Shown in pieces: positions 35,985 through 64,000 of a stretch of DNA of 64,000 nt. The notes beneath the pieces are model-generated. The model saw only the letters and a program-made list of their open reading frames with translations, did not search any database and was not told the DNA's origin. The position numbers and the translations under genes were made by a program. Position 1 is the first letter of the stretch. Each line of letters begins with the position of its first letter. The DNA is from Macrostomum lignano (taxonomy: Eukaryota): assembly GCA_002269645.1 (NCBI GenBank), contig NIVC01000412.1:868001-932000 (forward strand). The letters are read 5' to 3'.

Positions 35985-38900
35985 TCACCTAGCAACCAAC
36001 GCGGCAGCTGGCTGCTCGAGCACCTGCACTCGAACTCGACTGGTGACGCACAGCACAGGGTACAGGCTGCTGCACCTCGTGCCAAGCAGTTCAACTCCGC
36101 TAAGCGAAGCATTGCTGCTACTAGAAGAAGAGTCTTGCTGCTGCTGTTGTTGTTCGGAGATTTCATAAGCCAGTGCAGCCGGGCCGTGCGGCGGCAGGGA
36201 CAGGCGGAAGCAGACCCGCAAGGAAACGCTGCCATTGCTGCTACTAGAAGAAGAAGAAGCGGGAGATAGCGGCAGCCGGCAGACAGGCCGCTGGGCCAGC
36301 TCTCCGCCTCTAGCAATGAAAGCGACGCAGCGCTCCGTCACAATCAGTCCGAATCCGCAGTCGCCAAGCAACAGTCGCTGCTGCTGTTGCTGCTTCTGCG
36401 CCAAAGAAGAAGACGAATTGGAATTAAAATTCCCAGCAGACAAAATTGGACGCTCTGATACGCCTGTAGAAGCGAGAATATCCGACCACTGAGGCTGCTG
36501 CTGATGCAAGTGCTGGTGCTGGCCCCAGCCAATCAGAATCGTCCACGAAGTCCCATTAGAGACTGGGCAGTCGGGGCTGAACACGGCGGTTGAGAAGCCC
36601 CAAGTGGACGCCTCGCGCGGGAACAGCGCCTGCGCAGCTGACGGCTTGCCAGTGCCGCCGCCATTACTATGAGTAGTTGAAGCCGTATCAGGATGAGACT
36701 CGGGAATGCTTCCGGCAGTTCCAGGTGGCCGGCAGCTGCAAAGCACGCGCGATTGATTGAATGGGAATATGATAGCTTCCGTGTCGCAATTGAGGGATTT
36801 AGGGAAACAGGGAGACAAAAGAGACGGGAAGATGGAAGGATGGAGAAGTTGTGAGAAACGGAAAGGAAAGTGGGGAGACGGAGGGGAAAATAAGAAGACG
36901 GAGGGGAAAGTGGGGAGACGGAGGGAAAAGCGGGGAGACGGAGGGGAAGTGGGGAGACGGAGGGAAAAGTGGGGAGACGGAGGGAAAAGTGGGGAGACAG
37001 AGGGGAAAATAAGAAGACGGAGGGGAAAGCGGGGAGACTGAGGGGAAAGCGGGGAGACGGAGGGGAAAGCGGGGAGACAGAGGGGAAAGCGGGGAGACGG
37101 AGGGAAAAGTGGGGAGACAGAGGGGAAAGCGGAGAGACGGAGGGGAAAGCGGGAGACGGAGGGGAAAGCGGGGAGACGGAGGGGGAAGCGGGGAGACGGA
37201 GGGGAAAGCGGGGAGACGGAGGGGAAAGCGGGGAGACGGAGGGGAAAGCGGGGAGACTGAGGGGAAAGCGGGGAGACGGAGGGGAAAGCGGGAAAACGGA
37301 GGAGAAAGCGGGAAAACGGAGAAAGCGGGAAAACGGAGGGGAAAGCGGGAAAACGGAGGGGAAAGCGGGAAAACGGAGGGGAAAGCGGGAAAACGGAGGG
37401 GAAAGCGGGAAAACGGAGGGGAAGAGCCATAAGAGAGCACAAGACGTCCCGCCAGCACCTCGCACCCGCGTCTCACCTGCGCTCCTCGTCAGCTGCCTGC
37501 CCGGCTCTCGGCGGCGCCGCCAGCAGCCAGACCTCCGCCAGGTGTCGCCGCAGCCGGTCGTTGAACTCGGCAGGCAGCTGCTTGGCCTCGGCCGCCCGAG
37601 ACTCCAAGCCGAGACGCAGAGCGGCGCCAGAGTCGGCCAGCGAGCTCGCCTTGTCGGAGCAGCGGTCGAACTGGCGAAGGCCGGCCAGGTAGGCGGACAC
37701 CTGCAGGTCTGTCTGGTCAGTGGCTGCATCGGTTGCTAGGGAAGTCCCGGCTGATGATGGCGGCGAGGCTGAAGACTGCAGCAGCTGGCGGGACACTCGG
37801 GTCAGCCGGGAGGAGAGTCGACTCTGGAGAATATGACCCGTCATTTAATAAGTAAGATCAGTCATTCAGTATCCATGACTACAGTTATTTATTCTCTATG
37901 ACCAGTCATTTAATATGCATGACCCGTCATCCAGTATCCATGACGCGTCATTCAATATGCATGACCAGTTATTCAATATGCATGACCCGTCATTCAATAT
38001 CCATGACCAGTCATTCAATCAGTATGACCAGTCATTCAATATTCATAAACGGTCATTCAATATGCATGACCAGTCATTCAACATCCATGACCCGTCATTC
38101 ACCTGAGCAGCCAGCTGTCTCTCCAGCCGCGCCGCCGCCTCCGCGGCATCTTCAAGCGCCGCAGCCCGGTATTCCGCGTCCGCCCGGACCGCCCGGACAG
38201 CCGCCGCCAAATCCAGCGCCGCCCGCCGACTCTGCAGCTCCAGAGTGCGGCGCGCCTCGACAATCGTCGACCTGAGCCGGTCCCTTGCCCGTCTGGTCGA
38301 CGTCGCCTCTCTGTCGACTTCCAGCGCTAGGGCGGCGGCTTTCTCGCCAAGCTGTCGACACTTGGCACGTCGAGCTTCGGCTGCCGCTGTTAGTGTGATC
38401 AACGAGTGGCCGGCGTGTCGGCCAGCTGGCGTCGATGTCGACGGGGCTGATCTCGACATCGACGCCGATGTCGATTCGGGACTGTCGTCGTCGACGGCGA
38501 GACAGTCGGTGCAGACGCCGACGTCGCAGGTGGCGCAGTGCAGTCGAATCTGGTTGGCGGGATGTCGGGGGCACAGCGGGAGGCTGCCGCCGGCGCCGAC
38601 GCCGCGCTGACTTTGGCGACTCCTCGACTTCTCGCCGTTGGCACTCGAAGAAGGCGGCAGCGGTTTCGGCGGCTGTTGCTGGCCTCGGCGATAGCGGAGG
38701 GAGCGTCTAAGGCGTCTGAGAACGTCGGCGTCTCCGGCTAGTTGGACTACGGCGTGTCGACGCAACGGCCCGAGGCTCGGGTGGTAGCGGCGAAGGCAGT
38801 CGGTGCAGTAGGCCACCTCGCACTGGGGACAGTAGAGCTCGGCTGGCCGGCTGCAGGGGGCGTGGGATTCTCATGCTGATGATTGGGATTTCTCATGCTG

Positions 38901-40632
38901 ATGAGTGGGATTTCTCATGCTGATGATTGGGATTTCTCATATTGATTGGGATTTCTCATGATGATTGGGATTTCTCATGTTGATGATTGGGATTTCTCAT
39001 GATGATTGGGATTTTTCATGCTGACGATTGGGATTTCTCATGATGATTGGGATTTCTCATGCTGATTGGGAATTCTCATGATGATTGGGATTTCTCATAT
39101 TGATGATGGTAGGGATTTCTCATATTGATGATGGTAGGGATTTCTCATTATTGATGATTGTAGGGATTTCTCATATTGATGATGGTAGGGATTTCTCATT
39201 ATTGATGATTGTAGGGATTTCTCATATTGATGATTGTAGGGATTTCTCATATTGATGATTGTAGGGATTTCTCATATTGATGATTGTAGGGATTTCTCAT
39301 ATTGATGATTGTAGGGATTTCTCATATTGATGATTGTAGGGATTTCTCATATTGATGATTGTAGGGATTTCTCATATTGATGATTGTAGGGATTTCTCAT
39401 ATTGATGATTGTAGGGATTTCTCATATTGATGATTGTAGGGATTTCTCATATTGATGATTGTAGGGATTTCTCATATTGATGATTGTAGGGATTTCTCAT
39501 ATTGATGATTGTAGGGATTTCTCATATTGATGATTGTAGGGATTTCTCATATTGATGATTGTAGGGATTTCTCATATTGATGATTGTAGGGATTTCTCAT
39601 ATTGATGATGGTAGGGATTTCTCATATTGATGATTGTAGGGATTTCTCATATTGATGATTGTAGGGATTTCTCATATTGATGATGGTAGGGATTTCTCAT
39701 ATTGATGATTGTAGGGATTTCTCATATTGATGATTGTAGGGATTTCTCATATTGATGATTGTAGGGATTTTTCATATTGATGATTGTAGGGATTTCTCAA
39801 ATTGATGATTGTAGGGATTTCTCATATTGATGATGGTAGGGATTTCTCAAATTGATGATGGTAGGGATTTCTCATATTGATGATTGTAGGGATTTCTCAT
39901 ATTGATGATTGTAGGGATTTTTCATATTGATGATTGTAGGGATTTTTCATATTGATGATTGTAGGGATTTTTCAAATTGATGATTGTAGGGATTTCTCAT
40001 ATTGATGATTGTAGGGATTTTTCATATTGATGATTGTAGGGATTTCTCATATTGATGATTGTAGGGATTTTTCATATTGATGATTGTAGGGATTTTTCAT
40101 ATTGATGATTGTAGGGATTTTTCATATTGATGATTGTAGGGATTTCTCATATTGATGATTGGGATTTTCCTAATAGAAAAAAAACAACAAAAATGAACGC
40201 GCAAACAACGCACTGCTCACTCTCCCCGCGGCACAGCTCGCAGCTCAAACCGCCGGACTCGTCTTCATCCTGCCGCGACTTTTTCTGCAACAAAACTTGC
40301 CGCTTTTGCTCCAGCTCCGCCTGCTTCAACTGGCGCTCCTTAGCCCGGCTCTTTCTCTGCTGCTCGTCCCGAAATCTGGCAACAAACGCTGCCAGCGCCA
40401 GATTCCGGGGCAGCGCCGCCACGGCGCCGTCCAAATCGGCGCCGACACCGAACGGCAGGTCGCGCCGACACTGCGGACAGCGCCGGCCAACAGCGGACAG
40501 TGTCCGGCGAAGGCATTCGCGGCAGAGGCTGTGCGAGCAGGGCAGCACAACAGGGTCTGTGTACAGGTCCAGGCACACTGGACACAGCAGCTCGTCTTCC
40601 AGATCGTCGGTGGCTGACGATGGTCGGTCCAT
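35985..40632 (-). CDS. TRIM E3 ligase (RING, B-box1, B-box2, coiled coil, divergent SPRY-like domain); exons 40632-40214, 38850-38103, 37823-37477, 36735-35985 (~754 aa)
   Basis: C3HC4 RING CPVC..CSHSLCREC..CPQC, LPRNLAL motif, CELC..CPQCEVAYCTDC..H and CPRH..CATCDVGVCTDC..H..H; C-terminal LYPVLCV. Splice phases 2/0/2 join in frame. Confidence 0.85.
36865..37420. repeat. ~20-bp G-rich minisatellite in TRIM intron 3
   Basis: (GGAGACGGAGGGGAAAGCGG)n. Confidence 0.93.
37895..38100. repeat. 21-bp minisatellite in TRIM intron 2
   Basis: (ATGACCAGTCATTCAATATGC)n abutting the donor at 38102. Confidence 0.9.
38863..40166. repeat. 25-bp minisatellite filling TRIM intron 1
   Basis: (GGGATTTCTCATATTGATGATTGTA)n. 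Confidence 0.95.
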
Positions 40633-40845
40633 CCGCTGCGAGGCCTGCTGAAGCACACACGGTGTACATGTCGGGTGTGACAGACAGGCCTTGCGCTTGT
40701 TGAGTCTCTTCTATTTTAGTCCTAATCTACGAGACCTGCCCATGCAGTGCTTCATCTAGAACTCATTCTTCATCTTACAGTACTGAGACGTCCAGCGTGA
40801 TCTTTCTCTTATATAACAGAAACCTGTCTGAGACTTCTTTACAGT

Positions 40846-41733
40846 CCATTACTCTCTCCCTCTGCCCCGGTCATTACTCTCTCCCTCTGCCCCGGTCATT
40901 ACTCTCTCCCTCTGCCCCGGTCATTACTCTCCCTCTGCCCTGGTCATTACTCTCTCCCTCTGCCCTGGTCATTACTCTCTCCCTCTGCCCCGGTCATTAC
41001 TCTCCCTCTGCCCTGGTCATTACTCTCTCCCTCTGCCCTGGTCATTACTCTCTCCCTCTGCCCCGGTCATTACTCTCCCTCTGCCCCTCTGCCCCGGTCA
41101 TTACTCTCCCTCTGCCCCTCTGCCCCGGTCATTACTCTCTCCCTCTGCCCCGGTCATTACTCTCTCCCTCTGCCCTGGTCATTACCTCTCCCTCTGCCCT
41201 GGTCATTACTCTCTCCCTCTGCCCTGGTCATTACTCTCTCCCTCTGCCCTGGTCATTACTCTCTCCCTCTGCCCCGGTCATTACTCTCTCCCTCTGCCCT
41301 GGTCATTACTCTCTCCCTCTGCCCCGGTCATTACTCTCCCTCTGCCCTGGTCATTACTCTCTCCCTCTGCCCTGGTCATTACTCTCTCCCTCTGCCCCGG
41401 TCATTACTCTCCCTCCGCCCCTCTGCCCTGGTCATTACTCTCCCTCTGCCCCTCTGCCCCGGTCATTACTCTCTCCCTCTGCCCCGGTCATTACTCTCTC
41501 CCTCTGCCCTGGTCATTACCTCTCCCTCTGCCCTGGTCATTACTCTCTCCCTCTGCCCTGGTCATTACTCTCTCCCTCTGCCCCGGTCATTACTCTCTCC
41601 CTCTGCCCTGGTCATTACTCTCTCCCTCTGCCCTGGTCATTACTCTCTCCCTCTGCCCTGGTCATTACTCTCTCCCTCTGCCCTGGTCATTACTCTCTCC
41701 CTCTGCCCCAGTCATTACTCTCTCCCTCTTCCA
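40846..41733. repeat. 25-bp minisatellite between GEMIN7 and TRIM
   Basis: (CTCTCTCCCTCTGCCCCGGTCATTA)n. Confidence 0.95.
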
Positions 41734-42133
41734 TTACTCTAATTGACTTCTGAAAAATAACAGTTTTTGACTAATTAGACTAAAATGAAAATGACGCAAT
41801 GCACAACACTATTTGTTAGAAAGAAAAAACGCACTACTGGACAGACAGTAGTGTGATAAGTACATGCTAAAGCACATATCTATGCGAGTGTAATAGTATA
41901 AGTTAAATATTCACAGATGAATTATTAGACTTATAGTAACTGGACGCACTATACGGTTTTATTAAAACAATTTCATACTGACAATTAGCCTGATAATGGC
42001 GATTGCTAAGTTGAGCAGCTTACATAGGAGATAAATATTATGGACAGTTTCTAGTTTACAATATGTTCCTCATCTATTAACTGACAAACAAGTGTGACCA
42101 AGAGGAAATAATCATATTAAGAAATAAGCATAA

Positions 42134-42442
42134 TTATTGTTTATCGCAGGTGTCTCCCAGTGTTGCCATGGAGACCAGATCCCCGGTTCGAATTAGAGCT
42201 TTGTCCACTTTGCCCAGCGGAGCGGCCAGGCCCCGGACGCACAGCGCCGTGAAGTTGATGTCCGCGGCCAGAAACTCATCGGCTTGCAGTGGCGGCCGGC
42301 GACAGCCGTGAAACCGGAGCGTCATCGGACGACCTTCGGCAGCTTCCAGAGCTCGAAGAAATCGTTTGCGCAGTTCGGCGCGCTGATCGACTGAGGCTGC
42401 CTGCTCCCCCTCAGCAGTAGCTTTTGTTGACGGCGAAGTCAT
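42134..42442 (-). CDS. GEMIN7: Gem-associated protein 7 (SMN complex), single exon, 102 aa
   Basis: QRAELRKRFLRAL..FLAADINFTALCVRGLAAPLGKVDKALIRTGDLVS matches recalled Gemin7 (LRERYLRSL..QTPIGVQAEALLRCSDIIS). Confidence 0.85.
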   Translation of the reverse strand: MTSPSTKATAEGEQAASVDQRAELRKRFLRALEAAEGRPMTLRFHGCRRPPLQADEFLAADINFTALCVRGLAAPLGKVDKALIRTGDLVSMATLGDTCDKQ

Positions 42443-42529
42443 TTGCAAGTGAACAAAATTTTACACTGGATTTAATCTTTGGTCTGCAATGGACAATCGA
42501 AATGGTTGAAGCTTTAGAAAAGACTACTA

Positions 42530-42900
42530 CAAAGAGTCAAATGACGTCAAGCTTTTATTAAGCACTAAGCTACTGTTCAGACGCATGACATCAGTTGCCA
42601 TTTTTAAGTATCATGCTTTTCTACAAAGAGTTGAACTGTATGACGTCAAGTGGCTATTTTTAGCATCAAGTTGCCAAGAATTTAACTGCATGACGTCAGT
42701 GGCTATTTTGAGCATCGCGCTAACAAGAGCTGAACTAGATGGCGTCAGTAGCTATTTTTAGCATCATTCTACCAAGAGCCGAACTGTATGACGTCGTGAC
42801 TATTTTTAGCATTCATTCTACCAAACGGCGAACTGCATGACGTCAGTTGCTATTCTTAGCATCATTCTACCAATAGACTAACTGCATGACGTCAATTGCT
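42530..42900. repeat. ~49-bp degenerate tandem repeat with TGACGTCA core
   Basis: About 8 units between the TM2D1 stop and the GEMIN7 ATG. Confidence 0.8.
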
Positions 42901-42978
42901 TTTTTTCAGCCTTACATAAATAGATGCTTGCATAATATCCCAGGACTCACTCAGTTCAGTAAGTTTTAAAAGCTATGA

Positions 42979-44128
42979 TTAGGACGTTCCACCAGTAAAC
43001 AGAGTATCGTTGCTAGCCGGTATCCGAGTGACCAACGGGCCGTAGTGCGGAGACACGTAGTGAGATTGATCAGCTGGCCTGACAATCTGCAAGCTAATTA
43101 ATATGACGTCCAACAGGTGCAAAAACCCGTAGCCGCCAAAGGTGAATAGCTTGGCCAAGCCAATAGCCGGATAGCCCAGATAGAATCTGTCCAAGCCGAG
43201 AAAGCCGGTGAAAACGGACAGCAGAACGGCCACGTGAAACTGTTTGCCGTTCGTCCAACGACAAGCGGTGGTCGATTGGAAACAGCGATTGGGGAACTGG
43301 CTGGCGCCGGATAGGGACTGCAAATGTTGAGTTTGAGAGCTTGCTTAAAATTACTCGTACCTTGAATGCATTACAGGCACAGATGAGGTCAGATGCTATT
43401 TTAGAACAGACACGCCAGCCATTAGGGATGAGGTCAGATGCTATTTTTAGAACAGACACGCCAGCCATTAGGGATGAGGTCAGATGCTATTTTTAGAACA
43501 GACACGCCAGCCATTAGGGATGAGGTCAGATGCTATTTTTAGGACAGAGACACGACAGCCAATAGGATGAGGTCAGATGCTATTTTTAGGACAGAGACAC
43601 GCCAACCAAACGGATGACGTCGGAATGCTATTTATAGAACACCAAAATATAGACAAATTCAACACTTAAAAGAATGAACAGAGAATGACGTCAGATACTA
43701 TTTTTAGGACATGTTTAAGAATCTCCAGAACACACTTTTACACTGAAAAGAAAAGCTTTCCCTACCGTCGGGCAGAGAAAGTCGCCAATGCAGGTGAGAT
43801 TATCTGCTAATTCGCACAGGACGGGAGCGAAGCCCTCCTTGCTGCAGTTCACAGCCTGCTGAGTGGCCGGATTAATGTCCGGTTCAGAGCACAAGTACTG
43901 TCCGGGACGCAGCTGGTCGCAAGACAGCCGACTCGATTTCGACGTCGACGGCCAATCAGCCGTGGCTGAAGAAGTCGGCGAAGCCGCCGACGACGAAGAA
44001 GATGCACTGGCTGAAGCCGATGGAATTGCTGTTAGCTGCAGGAGCAGAAAAAGCAACAGACAGGCAAACGCAGGCGAGTAGAGGCGAATTTGATTGAGAA
44101 TAATTTTGGCGAATGGATGATGGAGCCG
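42979..44128 (-). CDS. TM2D1: TM2 domain-containing protein 1 (BBP-like); exons 44128-43766, 43317-42979; no ATG in the genomic frame
   Basis: CDQLRPGQYLC.EP.I.PATQQAVNC, CRWTNGKQFHVAVLLSVFTGFLGLDRFYLGYPAIGLAKLFTFGG is the TM2D1 signature; phase-0 intron. Confidence 0.9.
43380..43710. repeat. ~46-bp tandem repeat in the TM2D1 intron
   Basis: (GATGAGGTCAGATGCTATTTTTAGAACAGACACGCCAGCCATTAGG)n. Confidence 0.9.
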
Positions 44129-44394
44129 CTGAAAACGAAAAAAGGCAGTTTTAGTTTGTGACTAATTAGTGAAAAATTAAAATGAACCTTTCCAGACACT
44201 GTAATAATCCGATATTTTTCAAGATTTTACATCCTTCTTCTAATCTACTAAAAGTAGACTATTGTGACTATTAAATTGAACAATGAATTAATGTTATCTA
44301 AGTAATAATTTTAATAGCAATATTTATAACTGATTATTCCCGCTCCAATGACCAGATGTGCAACGGACAGCTCAGCCGAAGCTTTTGCGCGGCG

Positions 44395-44545
44395 CCTCTG
44401 AAGACACCCTCAATTACCCCAGCTAATGCTGGCACCCATTTTACAGCTGGGTGAACTGAAGCAATGCAGAGTTAAGTGTCTTGCTTAAGGACACAACTTT
44501 TTTGAGTGGGATCGGGACTCGAACCCCGACCTTCTGGGTCTGGGG
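44395..44545 (-). mobile_element. tRNA-derived SINE with CORE-like central domain
   Basis: Minus strand: B-box GGTTCGAGTCC followed by GTGTCCTTAAGCAAGACACTTAAC..CAGCTGTAAAATGGG, resembling the CORE/Mermaid-type domain. (CT)n at 44576-44645 interrupts the head. Confidence 0.7.
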
Positions 44546-44573
44546 TTTTAATTAGTAACATTACATAATTCAT

Positions 44574-44644
<71 letters not shown>

Positions 44645-45289
44645 CATGTCCCCTGACTACCACGCTAGATAAATGAGCGTGGTAATTCTAAAAAAGTGAC
44701 TGATTTACTGGGGATAGTTTCTAAGAAACAGTTTGTGGTCGTTTCTAAGAAACTCAAATCTATATCGGTGGTCTTTTCTTACTCGTAGAAATTTATTTAT
44801 GCCATGCTGTTTTTAGAATGTGATACCTTGGACGTGTGTTTTTTATAATTTTATTTATTGCTGTCGTTAACTGATTTTTTATGACGGATTGACTATTTCT
44901 AAGAAACATACATTTTAAGGCCTTTTGCGCATCACTCGTAGTACTAAAACAAAATTAAAAAAATTAAATAAGATCGACCAGATAAACAGTAAACTTGGAC
45001 AATACGTTTTTACACTTTATTAACTCGAAGCCGGCATATGCGAAGTTTACAGAAAAAGTGCATGCAAAAGTACCAATCGAAGGTGCGAACAGTTTAGTTT
45101 CTAAAATAAGATACAGGCAAGATACCATTATCTACGCACCTTTCCAAAAAAATTGCAGGGTTAATTAAAAAGCAAAAGAAATGCGAGCGTGATTTTTACT
45201 TAAAAATTTAGCAATATTTATCAGCAACAAGGAATCCGTCAACTGTAACATTAGGATTCATATAACTAGCGAACATTGAGGGAGGGAAG

Positions 45290-45835
45290 CTGAGGGTGGG
45301 GTTGGCCAGAGCGAGTGTACATTGGGGGAAGGGGAGCTGGGTGGGGTTGGCCAGAGCGAGTGTACATTGGGGGAAGGGGAGCTGGGGTGGGGTTGGACAG
45401 AGCGAGTGTACATTGGGGGAAGGGGAGCTGGGGTGGGGTTGGCCAGAGCGAGTGTACATTGGGGGAAGGGGAGCTGGGGTGGGGTTGGACAGAGCGAGTG
45501 TACATTGGGGGAAGGGGAGCTGGGGTGGGGTTGGACAGAGCGAGTGTACATTGGGGAAGGGGAGCTGGGGTGGGGTTGGCCAGAGCGAGTGTACATTGGG
45601 GGAAGGGGAGCTGGGGTGGGGTTGGACAGAGCGAGTGTACATTGGGGGAAGGGGAGCTGGAGTGGGGTTGGCCAGAGCGGGTGTACATTGGAGGAAGGGA
45701 AGCTGGGGTGGGGTTGGCCAGAGCGGGTGTACATTGGGGGAAGGGGAGCTGGGGTGGGGTTGGACAGTGGGCGTGCATTGGGGAAGGGAAGCTGGGGTGG
45801 GGTTGGACAGAGCGAGTTTACATTGAGGGAAGTTC
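45290..45835. repeat. 46-bp G-rich minisatellite between UCKL1 and TM2D1
   Basis: (GTTGGCCAGAGCGAGTGTACATTGGGGGAAGGGGAGCTGGGGTGGG)n with four G-runs per unit. Confidence 0.95.
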
Positions 45836-46151
45836 AGTAGACGGGTGTACATTGGATGATTCAGTAAACCTAGAGCTCCAGATGTATTTTTATGGCTCAA
45901 TTTACAGACTCAAAGCGTCCAGTTCTGGTGCACAAAAATGAACAAAAATAACCTTAAATGTTACTAAAAAAAATGATTAGTGATAAGAATGCAACGGAGT
46001 CAAGTAAAAAAACTTGGCGATCAACTATACCGTTATGCTTGTACAGAATCCTTTCTACTCCAACAAAATATTCTTTAAAAAGCTAATTTTACATTTTCGA
46101 TAGTAGTAGCAGGACGCGTATGCAGTAAAATATTGCAGAATCAAGCATCGA

Positions 46152-49100
46152 TCATTCGCACACAACAGCCGTCTCGCACTCCGAACAGTCGTCAGTCTCT
46201 TCTCCAGCTCCATCGTCGCCGCTCAAACCTGACGCAGTCGAATCGGTGCCGAAATACCGATCGCCAAAGTTGCCCAGGCCCGGCTGGATTCGGCAGGCAG
46301 ACGACAGCACCGGATCCACGGCCGCTGCCACCAGACGGACACCGGGAAAAGCGTAGGCCACTGCGGCTAGGCCGGCTGCTGAGGCTAACAGGCAGCAGAA
46401 GGTGATGTTCTCTTCTTGGCAGTCGTGATCCAGTAGCACTCGGATGGCCATCATGGCCGCTGCGCCACTGGCAACTGTGGCGTCCATTAGCAGCACCTGC
46501 CAACCAATATAATATAGGTTTGTGCAGATTTACCTGCTAGCTAAGTTAGAGATGAAGGTAGAATTCTAGTGAGAAGTAGAGGTGGGGGTAGAACTCTATC
46601 TAGTGAGAAGTAGAGGTGGGGGTAGAACTCTATCTATTGAGAAGTAGAGGTGGGGTAGAACTCTATCTAGTGATTAGTAGAGGTGGGGGTAGAACTCTAT
46701 CTATTGAGAAGTAGAGGTGGGGTAGAACTCTATCTAGTGGGAAGTAGAGGCGGGGCAGAACTCTATCTATTGAGAAGTAGAGGTGGGGTAGAACTCTATC
46801 TAGTGAGAAGTAGAGGCGGGGCAGAACTCTATCTATTGAGAAGTAGAGGTGGGGTAGAACTCTATCTAGTGAGTAGTAGAGGTGGGGGTAGAACTCTATC
46901 TAGTGAGAAGTAGAGGCGGGGCAGAACTCTATCTATTGAGAAGTAGAGGTGGGGTAGAACTCTATCTAGTGAGAAGTAGAGGCGGGCAGAACTCTATCTA
47001 TTGAGAAGTAGAGGTGGGGGTAGAACTCTATCTAGTGAGAAGTGGAGGCGGGGCAGAACTCTATCTATTGAGAAGTAGAGGTGGGGTAGAACTCTATCTA
47101 GTGAGTAGTAGAGGTGGGGGTAGAACTCTATCTAGTGAGAAGTAGAGGCGGGGCAGAACTCTATCTATTGAGAAGTAGAGGTGGGGTAGAACTCTATCTA
47201 GTGAGAAGTAGAGGCGGGGCAGAACTCTATCTATTGAGAAGTAGAGGTGGGGGTAGAACTCTATCTAGTGAGAAGTGGAGGCGGGGCAGAACTCTATCTA
47301 TTGAGAAGTAGAGGTGGGGTAGAACTCTATCTAGTGAGAAGTAGAGGCGGGGCAGAACTCTATCTATTGAGAAGTAGAGGTGGGGTAGAACTCTATCTTT
47401 ATTATTATTAGAGGCAGGGGGGTTGTGTGCACCCTGGCGCACTTTAAGCGACATAGGCACACAACCGGCGAGAGGCATTACTGCCCATTCCGCCGACTCC
47501 CCTGAGCAGGCATACAAGCGCGCGGATACGTACGCAGGCACACACTCACACAGGAGTGTACAGCGGCCCTAACTTTATTTATCATTAGGCATGTACACTT
47601 CACTGCGCCTTGGGGGGTTGGCTCTCAAGGCCGTTAATTGCACGAGCAGAGCCAAGCCGAGATTCCAATTCAGTCCCAAATTAACGTGACTACACTTGGA
47701 ATCGAGCCTGGGTCGCTGGCACACCAGAGCCTGCGCTAGACCGCTGGGCTACGGCCCCCCTTAGAACTCTATCTAGTGAGAAGTAGATGTGGGGACAGGA
47801 ATCTAAAAGACTTAAACCAAACGATTTAAACTTTAATACCAGAGTATTAATATTATACGAGAACACGGCCACCCACCTGAGCCTCTGATGTGCCGGGGGG
47901 CAGGCGCAGATAGTGCAGCTCCGGCTCACCAGTGTCTCTATTAGTCTGTATGAGTATCTTCCCTAATCTGGCGTCCTTAGCAACCGCTGCCAGGGCCGGT
48001 TCCATTGTTTCGCCAGCGCGTAGAATACTGACTCCCACTAGTATGGGATCCAGACGGCGCAAGCCCCTGTGGGATTGCAGTGAGCACGTTTGTATTATTC
48101 AATTTGACTCCACTGCCTATCTGGGTCCATCTTGGCACTCTAGTTGCCACCCACGCATCCATCTTGTCACCCTAGCTACCACCCACGCATCCATATTGTC
48201 ACCCTAGCTACCACCCACGCATCCATATTGTCACCCTAGCTACCACCCACGCATCCATATTGTCACCCTAGCTACCACCCACGCATCCATATTGTCACCC
48301 TAGCTACCACCCACGCATCCATATTGTCACCCTAGCTACCACCCACGCATCCATATTGTCACCCTAGCTACCACCCAAGCATCCATATTGTCACCCTAGC
48401 TACCACCCACGCATCCATATTGTCACCCTAGCTACCACCCACGCATTTATATTGTCACCCTAGCTACCACCCACGCATCCATATTGTCACCCTAGCTACC
48501 ACCCACGCATCTATATTGTCACCCTAGCTACCACCCACGCATCCATATTGTCACCCTAGCTACCACCCAAGCATCCATATTGTCACCCTAGCTACCACCC
48601 ACGCATCCATATTGTCACCCTAGCTACCACCCACGCATCCATATTGTCACCCTAGCTACCACCCACGCATCCATATTGTCACCCTAGCTACCACCCACGC
48701 ATCTATATTGTCACCCTAGCTACCACCCACGCATCCATATTGTCACCCTAGCTACCACCCAAGCATCCATATTGTCACCCTAGCTACCACCCACGCATCC
48801 ATATTGTCACCCTAGCTACCACCCACGCATCCATCTTGTCACCCTAGCTACCACCCACGCATTTATATTGTCACCCTAGCTACCACCCACGCATCCATAT
48901 TGTCACCCTAGCTACCACCCACGCATCTATATTGTCACCCTAGCTACCACCCACGCATCCATATTGTCACCCTAGCTACCACCCAAGCATCCATATTGTC
49001 ACCCTAGCTACCACCCACGCATCCATATTGTCACCCTAGCTACCACCCACGCATCCATATTGTCACCCTAGCTACCACCCACGCATCCATATTGTCACCC

Positions 49101-50334
49101 TAGCTACCACCCACGCATCCATATTGTCACCCTAGCTACCACCCAAGCATCCATATTGTCACCCTAGCTACCACCCACGCATCCATATTGTCACCCTAGC
49201 GACCACCCACGCATCCATCTTGTCACCCTAGCTACCACCCACGCATCCATATTGTCACCCTAGCTACCACCCACGCACACATCGTGGCACTCTACATTAG
49301 CTACAACTCCCTGGCTACATGATACGATCAGGATACGATAACTTGGATACTCAATCAATGGTCGACCCTTTAAGCACTCCATCACCAAATTATCCCACGG
49401 TATAAAAACTGGACTGGATTTCAATCCCACTAACTTGTAGGCCGATCCATCTGGCAGTTGAACTTCAACCGGTGCCCAGGCCTTCTCCGGCAGCTCTGCC
49501 ATGGCGTACTCAAACAGCAGCCGCATCAATCTGTTTGAATAGAATACGAACTCATCTCTAGCCGTGTCCCTGTTGCGCAACAGGGTTAACAGATGGCGCA
49601 CCTGCTGCGTCTGAGGCAGAATGCGTACGCTGGATGGGAGGCGTTCCGGTTTCTGTGAGGACGGGTTGAGATTGGGTATGGATAGCCATATGGTAGATGG
49701 GAGTAAGGATGAGCTAGGCAAGGATGCAATTTCATTTTACCATCTACTTAGTACAATCTGTACTCTGAGTTCTGCTTCTCTAATCTCATCCCAGCGTAGT
49801 ATCTACTCTCACCCTGAACCCTCTACTCTTATCCTAACCTATCTACTCCAATTCGGATCTCTCTACTCTCATACTAAACTTATCTACTCTCACCCGATCT
49901 CTACCCTCATCATCCGGCCTGATATATCTACTCTCTACCCCCTGATATCTCTCTCTACTCTCTCCTGCCGATCTCAGCGCACTCACCTGAAAAATATCGC
50001 CATAAGCCTCAGCCAATTGAGATCGCGTACTGACACCCCGCAGCACAAGCTGATTGCGCACGTGCCTACAGATCAGATCGATAGCCACCTGATTGTGGCC
50101 ACCCCTAGGTACAATTATGTCAGCTTTGCACCTGGTCGGCGCGATAAACTCGTCAAAGCTGGGCTTCACAAATTTTTCGTAGCTCTCAAGCACGCTGGCA
50201 ACGCTGCGACCGCGCTCGCTGATGTCACGGAGTAGCCGGCGGGCCAGGCACTCGTCTTCGTCTGTGTCCACAAATACCTGCGCGGTTTAATAAATGACTC
50301 AATAATAGCTGAGGTTGACGGGCTCAGGGTGGGT

Positions 50335-50380
<46 letters not shown>

Positions 50381-50477
50381 GAGACAGACAGGCAGAGAGA
50401 CAGATAGACAGACAGACAGACAGACATACACTAAGACAGGCAGACAGGCAGACAGACAGACAGACAGACAGACACTA

Positions 50478-50530
<53 letters not shown>

Positions 50531-50649
50531 CTAAGACAGACAGACAGACAGACAGAGAGACAGACAGGCAGAGAGACAGATAGACAGACAGACACTAAGA
50601 CAGACACACAGACAGACTGACAGACAGACAGACAGACAGACAGACACTA

Positions 50650-50682
<33 letters not shown>

Positions 50683-50685
50683 CTA

Positions 50686-50722
<37 letters not shown>

Positions 50723-50769
50723 TACACTAAGACAGGCAGACAGGCAGACAGACAGACAGACAGACACTA

Positions 50770-50802
<33 letters not shown>

Positions 50803-50805
50803 CTA

Positions 50806-50838
<33 letters not shown>

Positions 50839-50881
50839 CTAAGACAGACAGACAAGACAGACAGACAGACAGACAGACAGA

Positions 50882-50936
<55 letters not shown>

Positions 50937-52528
50937 GCCAGACAGACAGACAGACACAGACAATAGGACAGACAGGCAGACAGACAGACAGACAGACAGA
51001 CACAGACAATAGGACAGACAGGCAGACAGACAGACAGCCAGACAGACATACACTAAGACAGGCAGACAGACAGACAGACAGACAGGCAGACAGACAGACA
51101 GACAGATAGACGACAGACAGACAGACAGGCAGACAGACAGACAGACAGACACAAACAATAGGACAGACAGGCAGGCAGACAGACAAGCAAAAATGACCAA
51201 TGACGTGAGTTGATCAGTACAAAAACGTCCTACTCCCCGAATCGTACCTTCAAATCAATGAGATCCAGCAGTCGTTTGTCGCAGAAAGCCAAAATGCCTT
51301 CAAAGATGACAACATTGGCGCCGTAGATAATCTGAGTATTGTCGGGCACGCGGGCGTTGCTGGCGAAGTCGTACACGGGCACGCGGACCTGCTTGCCCTG
51401 TTTGAGCCTGGCCAGGGTCTCAACCAGCAGCTCAATGTCGAATGCGCACGGATGATCGAAGTTGAAATTATTCGATTCGATTAGATGCGTCTCTTCGGGC
51501 GTGGCGTCACGGTAATAGGAGTCCATGCTGAGCAGGGACACCCAGCGCTGGCGAAGGCGCTCGATTATCGACCTGAGTAAGCGTTGAATGTGCGTTGGCG
51601 ATTCTAAGAAAGTGACCAATTTATTGGGGAAAGTTTCTAAGAAGCAGGTTTAAAAACTGGTTTCTAAGAACACCTACTTTAGGGAGGCGTTTCTAAGAAG
51701 CAACCGACTGATTTACTGGGATTTTTATCAGGACACAGAAGAATTTAAGGGTAATTATTTCATAGAAATTGATTTTTTTCTACACCGGTTCTCAGAAATT
51801 GTTGTACTCTAGGCTGATTCTTAGAAACTGGTTTATTTTAATTGGGTTGGTTCTTAGAAATATATTTTGATAGACCGATTCTTAGAAGCTGGTATTTAAA
51901 AATGATTCTTAGAAACTTATTTATTCTACTAGGCTGATTCTCAGAAAATGGATTTATTGAAGGCTGGTTTGTAGAAATAAAAAATCAGTTTAGCATATGG
52001 ACTTTTCTTGACCGAGTCTTAGAAATCGATTTATTCTAGGCGGATTCTTAGAAACTGATTCATGCAATTTAAAAAAAGCGAACCGACTATTGTAAATTGA
52101 AGTCGTCTTTAAAGAGTTTCCCGATTTTATTGAATGCTTTGAGAGAGAAGCCAGCCTCAAAAAAATATTATTATGATTTTCTTGGAAATGCAAATTCCAA
52201 CACAACGGACCAATCAAAGTTATCCCCTACATTTTAAATAATCACAGCTGTAATATATTCAAATTTCACACCTGGCCACTGTAGTCTTCCCCGAAGCGCT
52301 GGCGCCGCACAGGCCAATTACAAACGATTGTCGGACGGCGCCGCCATCCGCGCCAAACCAGGGCGGCCGACCGGCAGTGAACACTCGGCACTCCGGCGCG
52401 CCGTCCAGTTGCAACACCGATTGCATCTTGTCAGCGCTGGTGCTGGTGAGGCGACGCCGACGTCGGCTACCATTGAGATGCTGGTGCTGGTGCTGCCGAG
52501 GCTGCGTTGGTGACGTCATTTTTTGCAT
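46152..52528 (-). CDS. UCKL1: Uridine-cytidine kinase-like 1 (UCK + UPRTase domains); exons 52528-52272, 51572-51248, 50277-49987, 49652-49435, 48066-47877, 46496-46152 (~541 aa)
   Basis: P-loop [78 protein letters not shown]; all splice phases compatible. Confidence 0.95.
46555..47398. repeat. 33/34-bp minisatellite with alternating variants in UCKL1 intron 5
   Basis: (AGAACTCTATCTA[G/T]TGAGAAGTAGAGG[T/C]GGGG[T/C])n. Confidence 0.95.
47399..47761 (-). mobile_element. Full-length tRNA-derived SINE with 13-bp TSD
   Basis: Head GGGGGGCCGTAGCCCAGCGG..GGCTCGATTCC (A/B boxes), (TAA)n tail, TSD TAGAACTCTATCT at 47386-47398 and 47762-47774. Confidence 0.85.
48145..49278. repeat. 32-bp minisatellite in UCKL1 intron 4
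   Basis: (CCACCCACGCATCCATATTGTCACCCTAGCTA)n. Confidence 0.95.
50336..51184. repeat. (GACA)n microsatellite filling UCKL1 intron 2
   Basis: Long imperfect tetranucleotide tract. Confidence 0.97.
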
Positions 52529-52716
52529 GAAAATCAGCAGTCATACTACTTATTAGTAGTTTTGCATCATTATTGCAAATTTTCAATCTTAAGAGGAATT
52601 TTACGTACTTGCATTTGAATACATGTCGATAGATTTAATTTGACTGTAGAGTACTGCATAGGTTAACTGAAGGGAGCCGGATAGTCATTTCACTAACATA
52701 TTGCTAAAATACATGG

Positions 52717-53160
52717 GGCATTTAAGCTAGCTAGAGGCCACCGGTGGGGGAGCTAGATGGCTAGTCCACATACACTTACACTAAAATCTGAGACTAATTG
52801 GTTGGATCATTTAAGCTACAGGCCCATGTGGAGAAGCTAGATGGCTAGTCCACATACACAAAAATCTGAGACTATTGCTTGGATCATTTAAGCTACAGGC
52901 CCATGTGAAGGAGCTAGATGGCTAGTCCACATACACTAAAATCTGAGACTATTGCTTGGATCATTTAAGCTACAGGCCCATGTGAAGGAGCTAGATGGCT
53001 AGTCCACATACACTAAAATCTGAGACTATTGCTCGGATCATTTAGGCTACAGGCCCATGTGGGGGAGCTAGATGGCTAGTCCATATACACTAAAATCTGA
53101 GACTAATTGCCTGGAGCATTATAGCTATAGGCCCCTAGTGGGGGAGTTAGATGGCTAGTC
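52717..53160 (+). repeat. ~77-bp tandem array of Helitron-like 3'-end/5'-start junctions
   Basis: GG..AGCTAGATGG-CTAG|TC.. with CTAG at 52761, 52845, 52922, 52999, 53076 and 53155. Confidence 0.75.
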
Positions 53161-53450
53161 TAAATATATTGATAGTAAACATTTCAGAAAATGACGATTA
53201 AGTCGCGTAAAAAATATTTTTAAATAAATTTATTTATATGCAAAGCTAACTTAAATTAATTCCGGTTGAGCTTTCAGGTAAGAGAGACAAAATCGAGAAT
53301 GAAATCATAGAAAAATGCAGTAAATTTTTTTGTTTTATAAATTATGAGCTATAAGAAAGATATAAAATTGACATTTACACCAATGGATATAAAAACACAG
53401 ATAAGTAATAAACCATAGCCGCGCAAAGTAGATTTGCAGTTTAAAAAATC

Positions 53451-55291
53451 TCAGCTAGAAGCACCCAATCCAGAGCCAGTCGATTTCTCGGATAGTCGAA
53501 ATGCCGGCTGGCTTCGATGCACGCCAACCGAAGCATGCAGTTGATCAACTCCGACTGACAACTGGTCGATCAGTGGCTCGCATTCCGCTAGCAGGCGGTC
53601 AACAGTATCAGCGCAGCTCGTCTCACTTAGCTCGGCGTCTGCTTGGCGTCGCTTCAGCGCATCGCAACTGCGGCGCAGGCTGGCAGCGGCGGCGCCGATT
53701 GCGGCGCCTGAGCGTCGGGCGATAGCGCGCGACTCAGCGGCGCGAATCTGGCGGCGGATTTTAGAAATTGGAGAAATGGAATTTGAAGGCACTATAAAAA
53801 TCTGCCTGTGATTTCAAGGGATACTTGCTGCTCAAGCACTTCTAAATCTGTATCTTCAACCCCAGTTTTTTTAGAATCTGCCTCTCCGCCCCTATAAATT
53901 TTTTTAAGAATCTGCCTCTCCACTCCTCACAGTTATTGGGAATCTGCCATTCCACCCCCCCCCCCCAGGCCCCAGTCCTTGGTAATCCGCCTCTCCGCCT
54001 TATCAGATAATCAATAGAAACCCAGCTTGCCAACCTCATCCTCCAGCAGCCGATGCAGACTGTACAATCCGTGACCTTCGTCAGCCAGTGTTTGATACTT
54101 GAGTCGACTTTCGCCACTCGATTCTCCATTGCTAAACGATGAAGCTGCTACCGCAGCTAAAGTGGTCGCAGTCGCAGCCTCCTGAGCCAACAGCGCCAGC
54201 TCAGAGTCTGGCCGCTGAAACGAGTCCAGCATCAGCCTGCTGGCCAGGCGCCTCTGCTCGGCTAAATCTACGCGCGCATCACCTCGTAGTAGCGCCGCTA
54301 TGGCGCCCTGATTAGCGCGCAATCGATCCGCCGCGGCGCCAATCAGACGGCGACGAAGCGCCACAGCCGAAGCGTGCTCGCTAGCGCCGCCGCCGCCGCC
54401 ACCGCCAACAGACGATAGACTGGCGGCGTAGCGGCGCCTCGCATCGGCGCCGGCGCGTTCAGCGGCCCCGCAACCGTTAGCGCGATAGGCCACGACAAGA
54501 GCTGCTTCATCTGGCGACAGGCCGGCCAGCTGGAGGTGCCGGCTGAACTGCTCGCTCAGGCTGGCGAAGTCTGACTCCGCAGCGGCTAAAGAGCGCCGAG
54601 CTGACAGGCAGTCCAGACAGGCGCGCGACTGAGCGGCGTGGGCCAGCGTCTCAGGCGGCACAGCGGCGGCGGCCTTAGGGGAGGTTACAGTGCCATATAT
54701 ACGTAGTTCAAGGAAATAGGAGCACAAGATTTCCCCAGAGTTTCTTCTACCAAACATCTCCTACAGAGCTCCTCCCACCAAAATCTTCCCATCGAGCCTC
54801 TCCAACTGAAGCTTTCCCACATTTCCAAACGACTCGAGGAGGAGACAAGTAAGCTACAAACTACTCACATCTTGATTGTCACCATCTCCAACTACCCCAT
54901 CTGGCTGTTCCTCATCGTGAATTTGTATCTCAGCAGCCTCTTTAGCCAGCCGAGCTAGAGCAGCCTCAGCGGAGTCTGCATCCTCTGACTCTGTTGGCTT
55001 CTTCTTTGAAGCAGACGATGATGCAACCAGACTGGCAGCTTCCGCCGCTCCGCCAATCTGACTTGCCAATCGACGCAACGACGCTGTTGTTAAGCGACGC
55101 CTAGCCAGCCGGTTGGCGCGCTCAATAGCGCCAAATTGGCGCGCCGCTAGATGAGGATTAGCGCCAATAGAATTTGTAGACATTGACAATGATGAATCAT
55201 CAGTGGCTAACTGGCAGTTGTTGTTTAACTGATTGCAACGGGCCCGAGCTGCGGCTATGTGAGCTTCTAGGCGGCTTAAATAGGCTTGCAT
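53451..55291 (-). CDS. Ala-rich coiled-coil protein, possibly augmin subunit HAUS5; exons 55291-54869, 54673-54035, 53747-53451 (~452 aa, 5' end may be incomplete)
   Basis: Three GC-rich exons join in phase 0. Collinear weak motifs IAALLRGDA, LYSLHRL and VGVHRSQPA resemble recalled HAUS5 (IRALIKGNS, LPSIHQL, VGDWWEQPG). Confidence 0.65.
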
Positions 55292-58040
55292 GCTTTGAAC
55301 TTTTTATTTCACAGAACAACAGGGCACAAGACAAGCTGAAATGTTTTTTATCTACATATTTACGAGTAATATAGCTGACTTACTCTGTTGATTTCAAGTT
55401 TTCATGAAGAGTTCACAATCAATATGCTTTTTATCATGATTATTCAAAGAGATAGACTACTTAAAGTAAATATCTTATTGTGTGTACAATCTCAGCTTAG
55501 TAGCAAGAAGCTTACATTGTTAATGCTAGAGCTATATTAAAAGCTTAATACTTAAGCTTGAACTTAGAGGCTTTAGAGTCATTATACAAAGCTCTATGTG
55601 AAGTGTATATCATAGCTTAACTGATACAACTTCCATTTATGCATTTTATAAGATTTTATAGTGTAAAAAACTTTTATATAAAAAGAGCCATCTACTCAGA
55701 GTATACAATGCAACTATAGCAATCAATAATTAAATATTATTATTAGCAAGAGTATACATTTGGAAGGATACAAGACTTAACATAGCTTAGCATATTAGAC
55801 CATTGTTCATTGTTTCATTATACCTCTAGAATTGCATTTTAAATAAAATCTATCTAGCATTCATTATTGGCTTAATTTAGCTTTTAAGAAGTATAGCACT
55901 TTGAATTTATCAATATAAAGCAAGGAATTTTGACTAAATAGATAACTTATAACTTATATTATAGCTATTATTTGTCTAGGTACATTTTTAGCTAGGGCCT
56001 ACTCCTCTTTTCTAGTAAGCATAAGCTATAAAAGAATGATAACTAAACCCATTGCCTTGCAAGATCTAATTCAAAATTAAAAATTTTGAATTTATGGTGC
56101 CTATTATGGTGCACCTCTTAAGTCGGCTTATAAGGCCTTTGGCACTGGGTGCCCCCATTCTTAGGCCACTATTAGGAAGGTATCTAGTGTATACCAGAGT
56201 TTTTTTAGGCAAATTTTTAGGTGTACACCTACACCATGCCATTTTGGTAATAGCCACTTTGGTATCAAATGAGAATAACAATATGTATTAATATTGCTAT
56301 GCTTTAAAATAAAATGCTAATGAAGTTTAAAGAAAGAACAACAAAAATAATTAAGATATGTTTTTGCACCCTTCAATAGATTTGTTATGATGATGTTATG
56401 ATGTCACAACTTAAAACTGCCAAAACAAATCTGCTAATAATGGGCACCATTAATGAAAGTCTTTAACTTGTTTATAATAATAGCAAAAATGTTATCATTA
56501 AAACAAAATAATAACATTAACTTTTTAAAATGTAATTTTGTAAAATTAAATAAAAGTTAACTGATAATCATTAATAAGTGTTAATCTGTTAAAGCCATAG
56601 TCAAGAAGGTGGCACAGTGTACACCAGAATAATTTTTTGGAAGAATATCTATGCACTATCTGTGTATTATAGTTTTGATTATGTGTTAGTATATTTCAGG
56701 GGTTTAATACAAAAAAATAATGAAACCTTATTTCTAGTGTCATGGTGTATCAAATGACCTTTTTTAACCTTTGTCTTGTCATGGTGGCGCACATTAAAAA
56801 CACCATGCATATTGCAGCAGCTGAGGCCCCGTAATGCATTTTTGCTTGACTCTTAGCATCCACATATTTTTAGGCACCAAATATTTTAGAAACTATAGTG
56901 TGTCTCATAATTATGTGCCATATACATTCTATATTGTAGATCATATTACATATACACCTGAAAGTATTTTGCTATCTAGTAAAGTGTATGCCACTAAAAA
57001 TTGTGATTAAAAAGCACCTGAACAATGCAATAAACAGTAGATATGTGCATGCATGCAGCAAAATAATTGCTGCAAAAAATGAAACCTGTATTATTTAAAT
57101 ATTAAAATAATTAATAAAACAAAATAGTTATGTATACTTTTGTTTTAGGTATACTGTATTTACTATTTTACACTAGTAACTGTAGAAACTTATAACTTCA
57201 GTGTTGGGCACCATTAATATAAAATATTAACTTATAGCTTAATAGCAATAGTGTTAGCATTAAAACAAAAAATCTTAACTTATTAACTCTTAATTTTAGC
57301 ACTAATTTCCAAAGCAGACTTCATAATGCACTGTCTTTGATTTTCCACCTTTTTAGCAAAACACAGAGGTCATCTAAGCAATTTACAAGCTAAAAAGTAA
57401 TAAATAATATTTTTTTAAAACTTGTATGTATAATACTACTAAAAGTAAGCATACAGTAAAATAATTAACTCAGCTATTTGAAACTTGAAAGCTAATTAGT
57501 TAATCATGAAATATGAATAGGAAGGTTGTTTTAGTAGCATTAACAGGCACAGCAGAAAGTCAGGAAAGATTGGGAAAGAAGTGAATCAAAGCGATTGATG
57601 CTCACGCGCAACAATAAAGTTCAAATTGTAATTTATTATTAAAGTTCATTAGTAAGTTGTTACATTTTCATGATCATCGTTATAAACAAAGAGATTAATT
57701 AGGCATTTAGGTAAATTTGAATACATTTATAATGTTGTAACTTCCTGTCAGACTTATATTTTGGTTCTTTCTTTGCATCTGTATTTGGTCATTGACATTG
57801 CCATTAACATTAACAATGAATTTGTTGTTAACTCACACAATTATTAACACAAATTTGTTAATCCATTAGTTCAAAAAAATCTTAATGACAGTCTATTAAT
57901 GTTAATGAAAAATCTTAATGCTTATTAATGCTTATTAGCGGATTGTGGTGCCCAACACTGCTTATAGTATATTATTTAAGAAATTAATTTATTATCATAA
58001 ATTTGAAATAGACTTTACACTATAGCAAAGGATTGTTTAA

Positions 58041-58127
58041 TGTATTTTCACGGTAGGCCGTACCCATATCCGCAGCAGGTCTCCAAGGTGAACAGCCTCT
58101 AGTCCTAGAACAATGTAGGTAAGGGAA
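58041..58127 (+). pseudogene. Isolated 28S rRNA fragment
   Basis: GGCCGTACCCATATCCGCAGCAGGTCTCCAAGGTGAACAGCCTCT..GAACAATGTAGGTAAGGGAA is conserved eukaryotic LSU sequence; flanks are AT-rich non-rDNA. Confidence 0.88.
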
Positions 58128-59176
58128 TTTATGTAATTATGACATACTTCAACACTTTTGTTCGCTGCAATGCAAGCTTGAACATGTATAGTTATAAATG
58201 ATTGTGCCAGAAAGTTGTATTTCCTCCTTGTACGCTATATGTGCACTAGGCCCTAGCTAAAGCATTTGTATGCCAGATGTACACTAGCTAAAGTGTTTGT
58301 ATATTGGAATTTTCTAGCATATACTACACTTACTGCAATATAGCATCCACTGGGGACCTCAGTATGTACTGCTTTTGTGTACCAAGTATACCAAGGACCC
58401 CTTTTATGCACCAGAATTTTCCATGGCATACACCACCTTCCTGACTAGGCCTATGCTATGGTATTAAAAGTTAACATAGAAAATACAGAATCTTAAAGGC
58501 TTATCTTTTTTCTAAAATAGATTTTAAAATGCATTCTAGTTCTCTTTGCTTTTCTATTTTTTGCAAAATACAAAGGTCATCTAAGCAATTTACAAGCTAA
58601 AACTAAAAAGTAATAAATATAATAACAATTTTAAAAAATTATATATAAAATACTATTAAAAGTAAGCATACTATTGTGGTAAGCCAGTCTACCACTTGGG
58701 TTCCAGCAGCAGTTGGTAGCAGTGCAATGCCTCCTACCAGTAGAGTGACTTGACGTCAACTAGCGGTTCCAATAATTGTTTTCTCCATTTTCCCCCGTTG
58801 TTCCCACCACTGCTCTTATAGCTATTCCTTCCCTTGGTCCCACCCCTTGTTTTAGCATGTTTTTGCGTTTCCCTTATTGGGTTTTATTGCTTTTTCCCTC
58901 GAGTATTCCACCCCATGCTCCTCTCTGTGTTCCACTCCCTGAATTATGCTGTGATTTGCATATAAAACTATTTGCATGTTTTATTTCTATTTTAACCCCC
59001 TTTCCTTCTTTTTGCCTCCTGCCTCTCCCTTGTCTAGTTTGTGTTTATCGTATCACATTAATCACTTATTCTGGGTTTTTTTTTCGCCAGAGATAAGGTG
59101 CGAAATCGCACCTTGTGCCAAATTTCAAGGTGCGATTTTAAGGCTCAGAGTGCAATTTCTCTTGAGTCTTGTTTAG

Positions 59177-63774: not shown

Positions 63775-64000
63775 GTAAGTTTTTGCTTTAAAGCCCTATT
63801 ATGATTAATATTATAAGTTATAAATCATAATATAGGCTAACTAATGTGTTTTCTCTTGGCCCTTGAATTGAGTTTAACCCAAATTTATAGCTGAAGTTTG
63901 AGTTGGAAGTTAAAACTTTGTTTAAATTATAGTTGTCATAGTCCTAATATTTTATTTGCGTAGGGCCTATTATATTAGCCATAAAAGGTCCTATGGCAAT

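Follow-up and report, generated by a model that had tools for sequence, protein, structure and literature searches.

A probable spliced-leader operon in Macrostomum lignano with the gene order gene 1, UCKL1, TM2D1, GEMIN7 and a TRIM-like gene

Are five neighbouring genes that point the same way on one contig of Macrostomum lignano transcribed together and separated by spliced-leader (SL) trans-splicing, or are they transcribed from promoters of their own? The question arises from a 64,000-nt stretch of the Mlig_3_7 assembly (GCA_002269645.1, contig NIVC01000412.1, positions 868,001 to 932,000), which we call the window; positions are given in window coordinates, to which 868,000 is added to obtain record coordinates. 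Window and contig record agree base for base across 26 kb. On its minus strand five co-directional genes lie head to tail: a gene referred to here as gene 1, followed by UCKL1, TM2D1, GEMIN7 and a TRIM-like gene. A first reading of the bare sequence (the original prediction) had placed five co-directional minus-strand genes here, and matches to GenBank proteins and Pfam domains bore this out. We read the locus as a spliced-leader operon of M. lignano, with a probability of about 0.7. A three-gene operon of gene 1, UCKL1 and TM2D1 is well supported, and we hold this part with somewhat greater confidence. That all five genes form a single operon stands at about even odds, and the membership of GEMIN7 and the TRIM-like gene is plausible but unproven.

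The assembly holds three copies of the five-gene cluster, in the window (35000-56500) and on scaffolds NIVC01002137.1 (L002) and NIVC01000118.1 (L003). The three copies are collinear for the whole five-gene order, with 92–98% identity and with minisatellites of varying length, which fits the known duplicated karyotype of the M. lignano DV1 line. The genes are adjacent and in the same orientation with no interruption from the opposite strand, as judged from the GenBank gene lists of the three copies and from scans of both strands for open reading frames (ORFs) and Pfam domains.

For this species, published genome-wide work describes both SL trans-splicing and operons whose spacers are filled with repeats (PMC5730564; PMC8629364). 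Wudarski et al. (2017) placed reads that contain the SL and reads from poly(A) ends on this assembly and told transcriptional units apart from the genes cut from them at the mapped SL and poly(A) sites; ~7% of assembled transcripts were precursors with several trans-splice sites (PMC5730564). Ustyantsev & Berezikov (2021) described a single 35-nt SL, CGGTCTCTTACTGCGAAGACTCAATTTATTGCATG, which ends in ATG, and the acceptor motif [T/C]TNCAG (PMC8629364). According to the same study, 30% of genes are trans-spliced and 15% lie in operons of two to nine genes; the operons number in the thousands, and most hold 2–3 genes. Repeats inflate their spacers, whose repeat-adjusted length has a mode of ~100 bp and was given a cut-off of 1 kb, and assembled units often break where operon spacers are rich in repeats (PMC8629364).

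The names of the genes at this locus provide the first evidence. Gene 1, UCKL1 and TM2D1, which are non-homologous, share the GenBank transcriptional-unit prefix Mlig008918 (g1, g2 and g3), and another of the locus copies lists gene 1 and UCKL1 as Mlig000183 g1 and g2. A prefix denotes a cluster of 95%-identical transcriptional units (PMC5730564); therefore, only non-homologous genes that share a prefix imply co-transcription, and a prefix common to such genes can arise only if at least one assembled unit spans them. A reading of the suffix “.gN” as the position within a unit was dropped, because one prefix occurs on TRIM copies from different scaffolds (g1 and g3). UCKL1, TM2D1 and the TRIM-like gene are all annotated as 5′-partial, and among the older UniRef models are fusions of gene 1 with UCKL1 and, in one case, of TM2D1 with GEMIN7 (fused models P0126 and P0130).

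Transcription across the first gap is also indicated by an annotated 681-aa chimera in L003 (PAA90266.1; P0122), in which gene 1 exon 1 is spliced straight onto the UCKL1 acceptor. The chimera uses the normal gene 1 donor, GTGAGT. As a cis-spliced read-through isoform, it requires one continuous RNA extending from the gene 1 promoter into UCKL1.

TM2D1 bears on the question through its start codon. The acceptor cgttttCAG ends at 44129 and the annotated start lies exactly there; in L002 and L003 the TM2D1 coding sequence (CDS) likewise begins, with RLHH, directly after cgttttCAG. No ATG was found in the TM2D1 reading frame ahead of the signal peptide (44128-44060, minus strand). A TM2D1 that lacks an ATG and starts at a perfect acceptor is therefore either trans-spliced or cis-spliced from an upstream RNA. 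When joined to the TM2D1 exon, the terminal AUG of the SL is in frame and yields MRLHHPFAK..., and, judging from the sequence, the start codon would have to be this AUG.

The UCKL1 junction differs between this scaffold and the other two copies. In L002 and L003 the UCKL1 CDS starts directly after gattttCCAG (gattttCCAG/CAA, the slash marking the junction), whereas this scaffold reads ttttcATG/CAA in place of ttttcCAG/CAA (L002 3146-3148; L003 2000-2002). Within ±150 nt of the junction the three copies differ at these two adjacent acceptor bases only, and both changed bases match the terminal bases of the SL (..GCATG). Because the Pilon polishing of Mlig_3_7 drew on RNA-seq reads in addition to DNA reads, the simplest explanation is probably that SL-bearing RNA-seq reads overwrote the acceptor during polishing. 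If so, the CAG-to-ATG change indirectly records RNA joined to the SL at the UCKL1 junction itself, and an acceptor overwritten with SL bases could mislead motif or splice-site surveys on Mlig_3_7. A real allele is less likely, and we consider it highly unlikely that the SL 3′ end was copied into the genome at the trans-splice site by RNA-templated conversion; were that so, an SL-dependent cistron would have gained a genomic start codon, and one UCKL1 copy would be uncoupled from operon processing. The SL AUG is in frame with the UCKL1 exon start, giving M-QKMTSP..., and the CDS of a paralogous M. lignano UCKL1 elsewhere shows the same pattern, beginning directly after catttCAG. A search with UCKL1 returned one Logan-derived match (P0003, 66% identical), whose contig has no SL at its 5′ end and is uninformative. 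As a separate observation, a change in the same direction, cAG to cTG, is seen immediately ahead of the start of a 5′-partial WW-domain gene (position 26340 of L005 versus 17515 of L006).

With that of UCKL1 read in the other locus copies, all four downstream genes have acceptors that conform to [T/C]TNCAG. At the TRIM-like gene, the annotated models begin 3–21 nt after a tandem acceptor, gcttCAGCAG (40654-40645), and the SL AUG is in frame with the CDS; an AATAAA at 35901 follows the stop codon. The best candidate for GEMIN7 is ccattGCAG (TTGCAG), with its G at 42484, and a second AG (ATCCAG) lies at 42466. The original prediction had pointed to acceptor-like AGs at three places. Those at 44129 and 40648 fit the motif and lie at or next to annotated 5′ ends; the one at 42466 is present, but the TTGCAG at 42484 fits better. 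Gene 1 also has a candidate acceptor (Table 1), which would put its exon start at 55335; an AUG brought there by the SL would begin an upstream ORF of 9 codons.

We measured each gap from the stop codon to the next acceptor and located tandem repeats with Tandem Repeats Finder. The four gaps are 925, 2023, 495 and 1486 nt long (536 nt for the third if measured to the GEMIN7 ATG), in agreement with the ~0.9, 2.0, 0.5 and 1.5 kb originally estimated. Tandem repeats account for 432, 629, 288 and 883 nt, or 31–59% of each gap, leaving 493, 1394, about 210–250 and 603 nt. Thus, the estimate that unique spacing amounts to a few hundred bp holds for three gaps (493, ~230 and 603 nt) but fails between UCKL1 and TM2D1 (1394 nt). 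The gaps had further been described as filled by minisatellites or short interspersed nuclear elements (SINEs). Minisatellites are indeed abundant, but the SINEs were not borne out: the dispersed repeat amounts to ~190 nt in gap 2, and no tRNA-like or Rfam match was found as evidence of a SINE. In spacers 1 and 3, a putative poly(A) signal 70–108 nt before the acceptor is the classical layout of an operon, and the last 110 nt of spacer 3 are nearly identical in the three locus copies. Large minisatellites also lie inside the introns of UCKL1 and the TRIM-like gene (50335-51185, 48126-49277, 46565-47398, 39087-40161 and 36865-37423); they consist of (GACA)n and units of 32, 33, 25 and 20 nt, and several yield long spurious ORFs in multiple frames.

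Table 1. Positions of the five genes, their spacers and putative acceptors in the window
Feature	Window positions	Strand	Details
Gene 1, BOX15_Mlig008918g1	53451..55291	-	452 aa, own ATG; exact match to PAA83685.1
Gene 1 introns	54868..54674 and 54034..53748	-	splice model reproduces PAA83685.1
Candidate trans-splice acceptor of gene 1	55336..55343	-	CATTTCAG; 44 nt upstream of ATG; conserved in L002
Spacer 1	52526..53450	-	77-nt-period minisatellite 52729-53160; ATTAAA 52639-52634, 108 nt before UCKL1 exon start
Putative UCKL1 trans-splice acceptor site	52526..52528	-	ATG here; CAG in both other locus copies
UCKL1, BOX15_Mlig008918g2	46152..52525	-	annotated 5′-partial, 540 aa; reproduces PAA83684.1
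UCKL1 six exons	52525-52272, 51572-51248, 50277-49987, 49652-49435, 48066-47877, 46496-46152	-	
Spacer 2	44129..46151	-	46-nt minisatellite 45273-45832; (CT)n 44576-44644; several AATAAA/ATTAAA
Spacer 2 dispersed-repeat pieces	44411-44533 and 44672-44734		about 190 nt in all
TM2D1, BOX15_Mlig008918g3	42979..44128	-	annotated 5′-partial; one intron 43765..43318; reproduces PAA83683.1
Spacer 3	42484..42978	-	49-nt minisatellite 42619-42906; AATAAA 42559-42554, 70 nt before candidate acceptor
GEMIN7	42134..42442	-	single exon, 102 aa, own ATG; Pfam PF11095
Spacer 4	40648..42133	-	AATAAA 41963-41958; 25-nt minisatellite 40847-41729; tandem acceptor gcttCAGCAG
TRIM-like gene, BOX15_Mlig023376g1	35985..40647	-	annotated 5′-partial, 752 aa; own ATG at 40632
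TRIM-like introns	40213..38851, 38102..37824, 37476..36736	-	constrained splice enumeration recovers exact PAA83682.1

Domain content supports the names UCKL1, TM2D1 and GEMIN7. UCKL1 has an N-terminal PRK domain (PF00485) fused to a C-terminal UPRTase domain (PF14681), the architecture of a UCKL1 protein, and is 52–59% identical to annotated animal UCKL1. TM2D1 carries the TM2 domain (PF05154) and belongs with TM2D1, biscotti and CG10795, its top named matches. GEMIN7 was assigned by the Gemin7 domain (PF11095, E = 7.9e-17, 71 of 76 profile positions covered). The TRIM-like protein has Pfam matches to a RING (residues 15-53) and to two B-boxes (129-171 and 229-254), the leading parts of the RING, B-box and coiled-coil series of TRIM proteins; a helical region and a C-terminal domain without assignment follow. 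For none of the three locus copies does GenBank list GEMIN7, or any gene between TM2D1 and TRIM; the GEMIN7 ORF is intact in each (tblastn, 97–100% identity).

The name of gene 1, which had been proposed to be HAUS5-like, did not survive. A Pfam search at E ≤ 1 returned no HAUS5 domain, and nothing else except one weak, unrelated match (DUF1993, E = 0.53). No homologue beyond the gene's own copies was found among 5.8 billion clusters, exhaustive phmmer against 1.84 billion representatives recovered the same copies only, and no PDB chain matched at E ≤ 10. The copies concerned are P0138, which the searches returned, and P0130, a fused UniRef model that falls in the same cluster. A single-sequence AlphaFold2 model is all helices but of low confidence (mean pLDDT, the predicted local distance difference test, 51.5), too poor for a fold search. 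Identity with HAUS5 (augmin subunit 5) was therefore rejected, and the product of gene 1 is most aptly called a lineage-restricted (orphan) protein that is predicted to be all-helical.

How would such an operon work? RNA polymerase II would start upstream of gene 1, above position 55335, and transcription would run the length of gene 1, UCKL1 and TM2D1 and would probably continue across GEMIN7 and the TRIM-like gene. We infer a single promoter, as well as SL addition at each of the candidate acceptors. The upstream cistrons would each be cleaved and polyadenylated, while the downstream cistrons would each receive the 35-nt SL, ending in AUG, at a [T/C]TNCAG acceptor. The cap would come from the SL, and so would the sole start codon of TM2D1; in UCKL1 and TRIM the SL AUG would lie in frame and add a few N-terminal residues. 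The kilobase-scale spacers may be ordinary short intercistronic regions swollen by minisatellites.

The main rival of a single five-gene operon is a locus of two or three units, in which a three-gene operon is followed by GEMIN7 and/or the TRIM-like gene, for which spacer 3 or 4 would hold the promoter(s) and which would be individually SL trans-spliced, like ~60% of trans-spliced M. lignano genes. We consider this arrangement unlikely. The unit prefix of TRIM is separate from that of its neighbours (Mlig023376 here and Mlig021474 in the other copies), the GenBank gene set lacks GEMIN7, spacer 4 with its 603 unique nt leaves room for a promoter, and an operon of only two or three genes would be the usual size for this species. 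Repeats tend to split units, and do so often in spacers such as spacer 4, which is 59% minisatellite, but separate promoters would give the same split for TRIM, as they would for TM2D1 in the copies where its prefix is separate. Against additional promoters stand the AATAAA of spacer 3, only 70 nt before a motif-conforming acceptor, the UniRef model that joins TM2D1 to GEMIN7, and the adjusted gaps of ~230 and 603 nt, which satisfy the published under-1-kb rule. The original prediction of an SL-resolved polycistronic unit stands as to kind, given the species, the prefix shared by genes 1–3 and the acceptors; its five-gene extent is less firm, since GEMIN7 is unannotated and TRIM has another prefix.

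At the other extreme, there may be no operon at all, and five co-oriented genes would each have an independent promoter, the shared names, fusions and chimera being read-through noise or over-merging by a short-read assembler. Four same-strand neighbour pairs would arise by chance about once in 16, spacer 2 is long, and unit boundaries vary among the three copies. Even so, we regard this as very improbable: TM2D1 has no ATG and begins at a perfect acceptor, CDS starts fall exactly at [T/C]TNCAG motifs (chance ~1/500 per site), the chimeric mRNA joins a real gene 1 donor to a real UCKL1 acceptor, and such operons exist by the thousand in M. lignano. Several further findings count against the operon as we read it. 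The other two copies assign TM2D1 to a unit of its own, Mlig019512, as TRIM is assigned to another unit here. The UCKL1 acceptor AG is missing in this scaffold. Spacer 2, at 1394 nt after subtraction of tandem repeats, exceeds the published 1-kb rule, and would fall below it only if one also took off interspersed repeats and the UCKL1 3′ untranslated region, which belongs to the gene in the published measure. GEMIN7 is missing from the public annotation, a motif match is the evidence for its candidate trans-splicing, and the SL AUG at its acceptor would open a four-codon upstream ORF. Protein searches with gene 1 and TM2D1 found no Logan-derived Macrostomum proteins, and exact-protein look-ups of GEMIN7 (the 102- and 104-aa forms) matched no M. 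lignano RNA contig. Finally, synteny across species, which had been proposed as a check, did not bear the cluster out: it is not kept at the 67%-identical M. lignano UCKL1 paralogue or at the Lingula UCKL1, both of which have different neighbours. These comparisons give no sign of an ancient linkage of the five genes.

The promoter of the proposed operon should lie in the region upstream of gene 1 (56000-64000), which is AT-rich (28–37% GC), contains no convincing ORF and extends for more than 7 kb with no annotated gene. A scan of the window for an SL RNA gene, an Rfam family or a tRNA found none. Elsewhere in the window, the plus strand carries a prenylcysteine oxidase/lyase gene (16885-19962; Pfam PF07156, in three ORF blocks). 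Behind it, in the same direction, lie glutamine-rich ORFs that match no Pfam family (22253-26022). Both converge on the minus-strand cluster and may be another co-oriented pair.

The five-gene locus is one more example of a class known from earlier work, in a genome that had already been annotated, and is not new. It matters little beyond confirmation, as it is already partly annotated as one unit. Its gene identifiers were not found in the text of the literature searched, nor in the supplementary files of a 2018 paper. Its use is that of a worked example, in which a putative SL-donated TM2D1 start codon and a cis-spliced read-through isoform occur together and three diverged copies can be compared.

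When the locus is set beside the SL operons known from M. lignano, it shares with them the species and assembly, the 35-nt SL with its AUG, the [T/C]TNCAG acceptors, co-oriented conserved genes and minisatellite-swollen spacers. There is no difference in kind; the departures are the unannotated GEMIN7 and one spacer that is borderline by the 1-kb rule. Since 75% of M. lignano operons have two genes and 18% three, with a maximum of nine, five genes would fall in the upper tail, if all belong. The operons of C. elegans are likewise transcribed as polycistronic pre-mRNAs, whose cistrons are separated by coupled 3′ end formation and SL trans-splicing, and spacers 1 and 3 resemble them in having a poly(A) signal ~70–110 nt upstream of the next acceptor. 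In contrast to C. elegans, one SL has been described in M. lignano and no specialised SL2-type downstream leader has been reported, and the spacers of this locus reach 2 kb through repeats. Nematode SLs are not known to donate a start-codon AUG, whereas the AUG of the M. lignano SL can act as one. Flatworm SLs (Schistosoma, Echinococcus, planarians) do end in AUG, and TM2D1 here would require such an AUG; the 3′-terminal AUG of a flatworm SL can reportedly act as the initiator methionine, a finding attributed to Cheng et al. in J Biol Chem in 2006. Few operons have been reported in Schistosoma, and those of M. lignano are far more extensive (PMC8629364). Ciona and Oikopleura resemble M. lignano in that a single SL class serves monocistronic genes and operon genes alike. 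Between the genes of tunicate operons there is hardly any intercistronic sequence, whereas the spacers of the M. lignano locus measure 0.5–2 kb.

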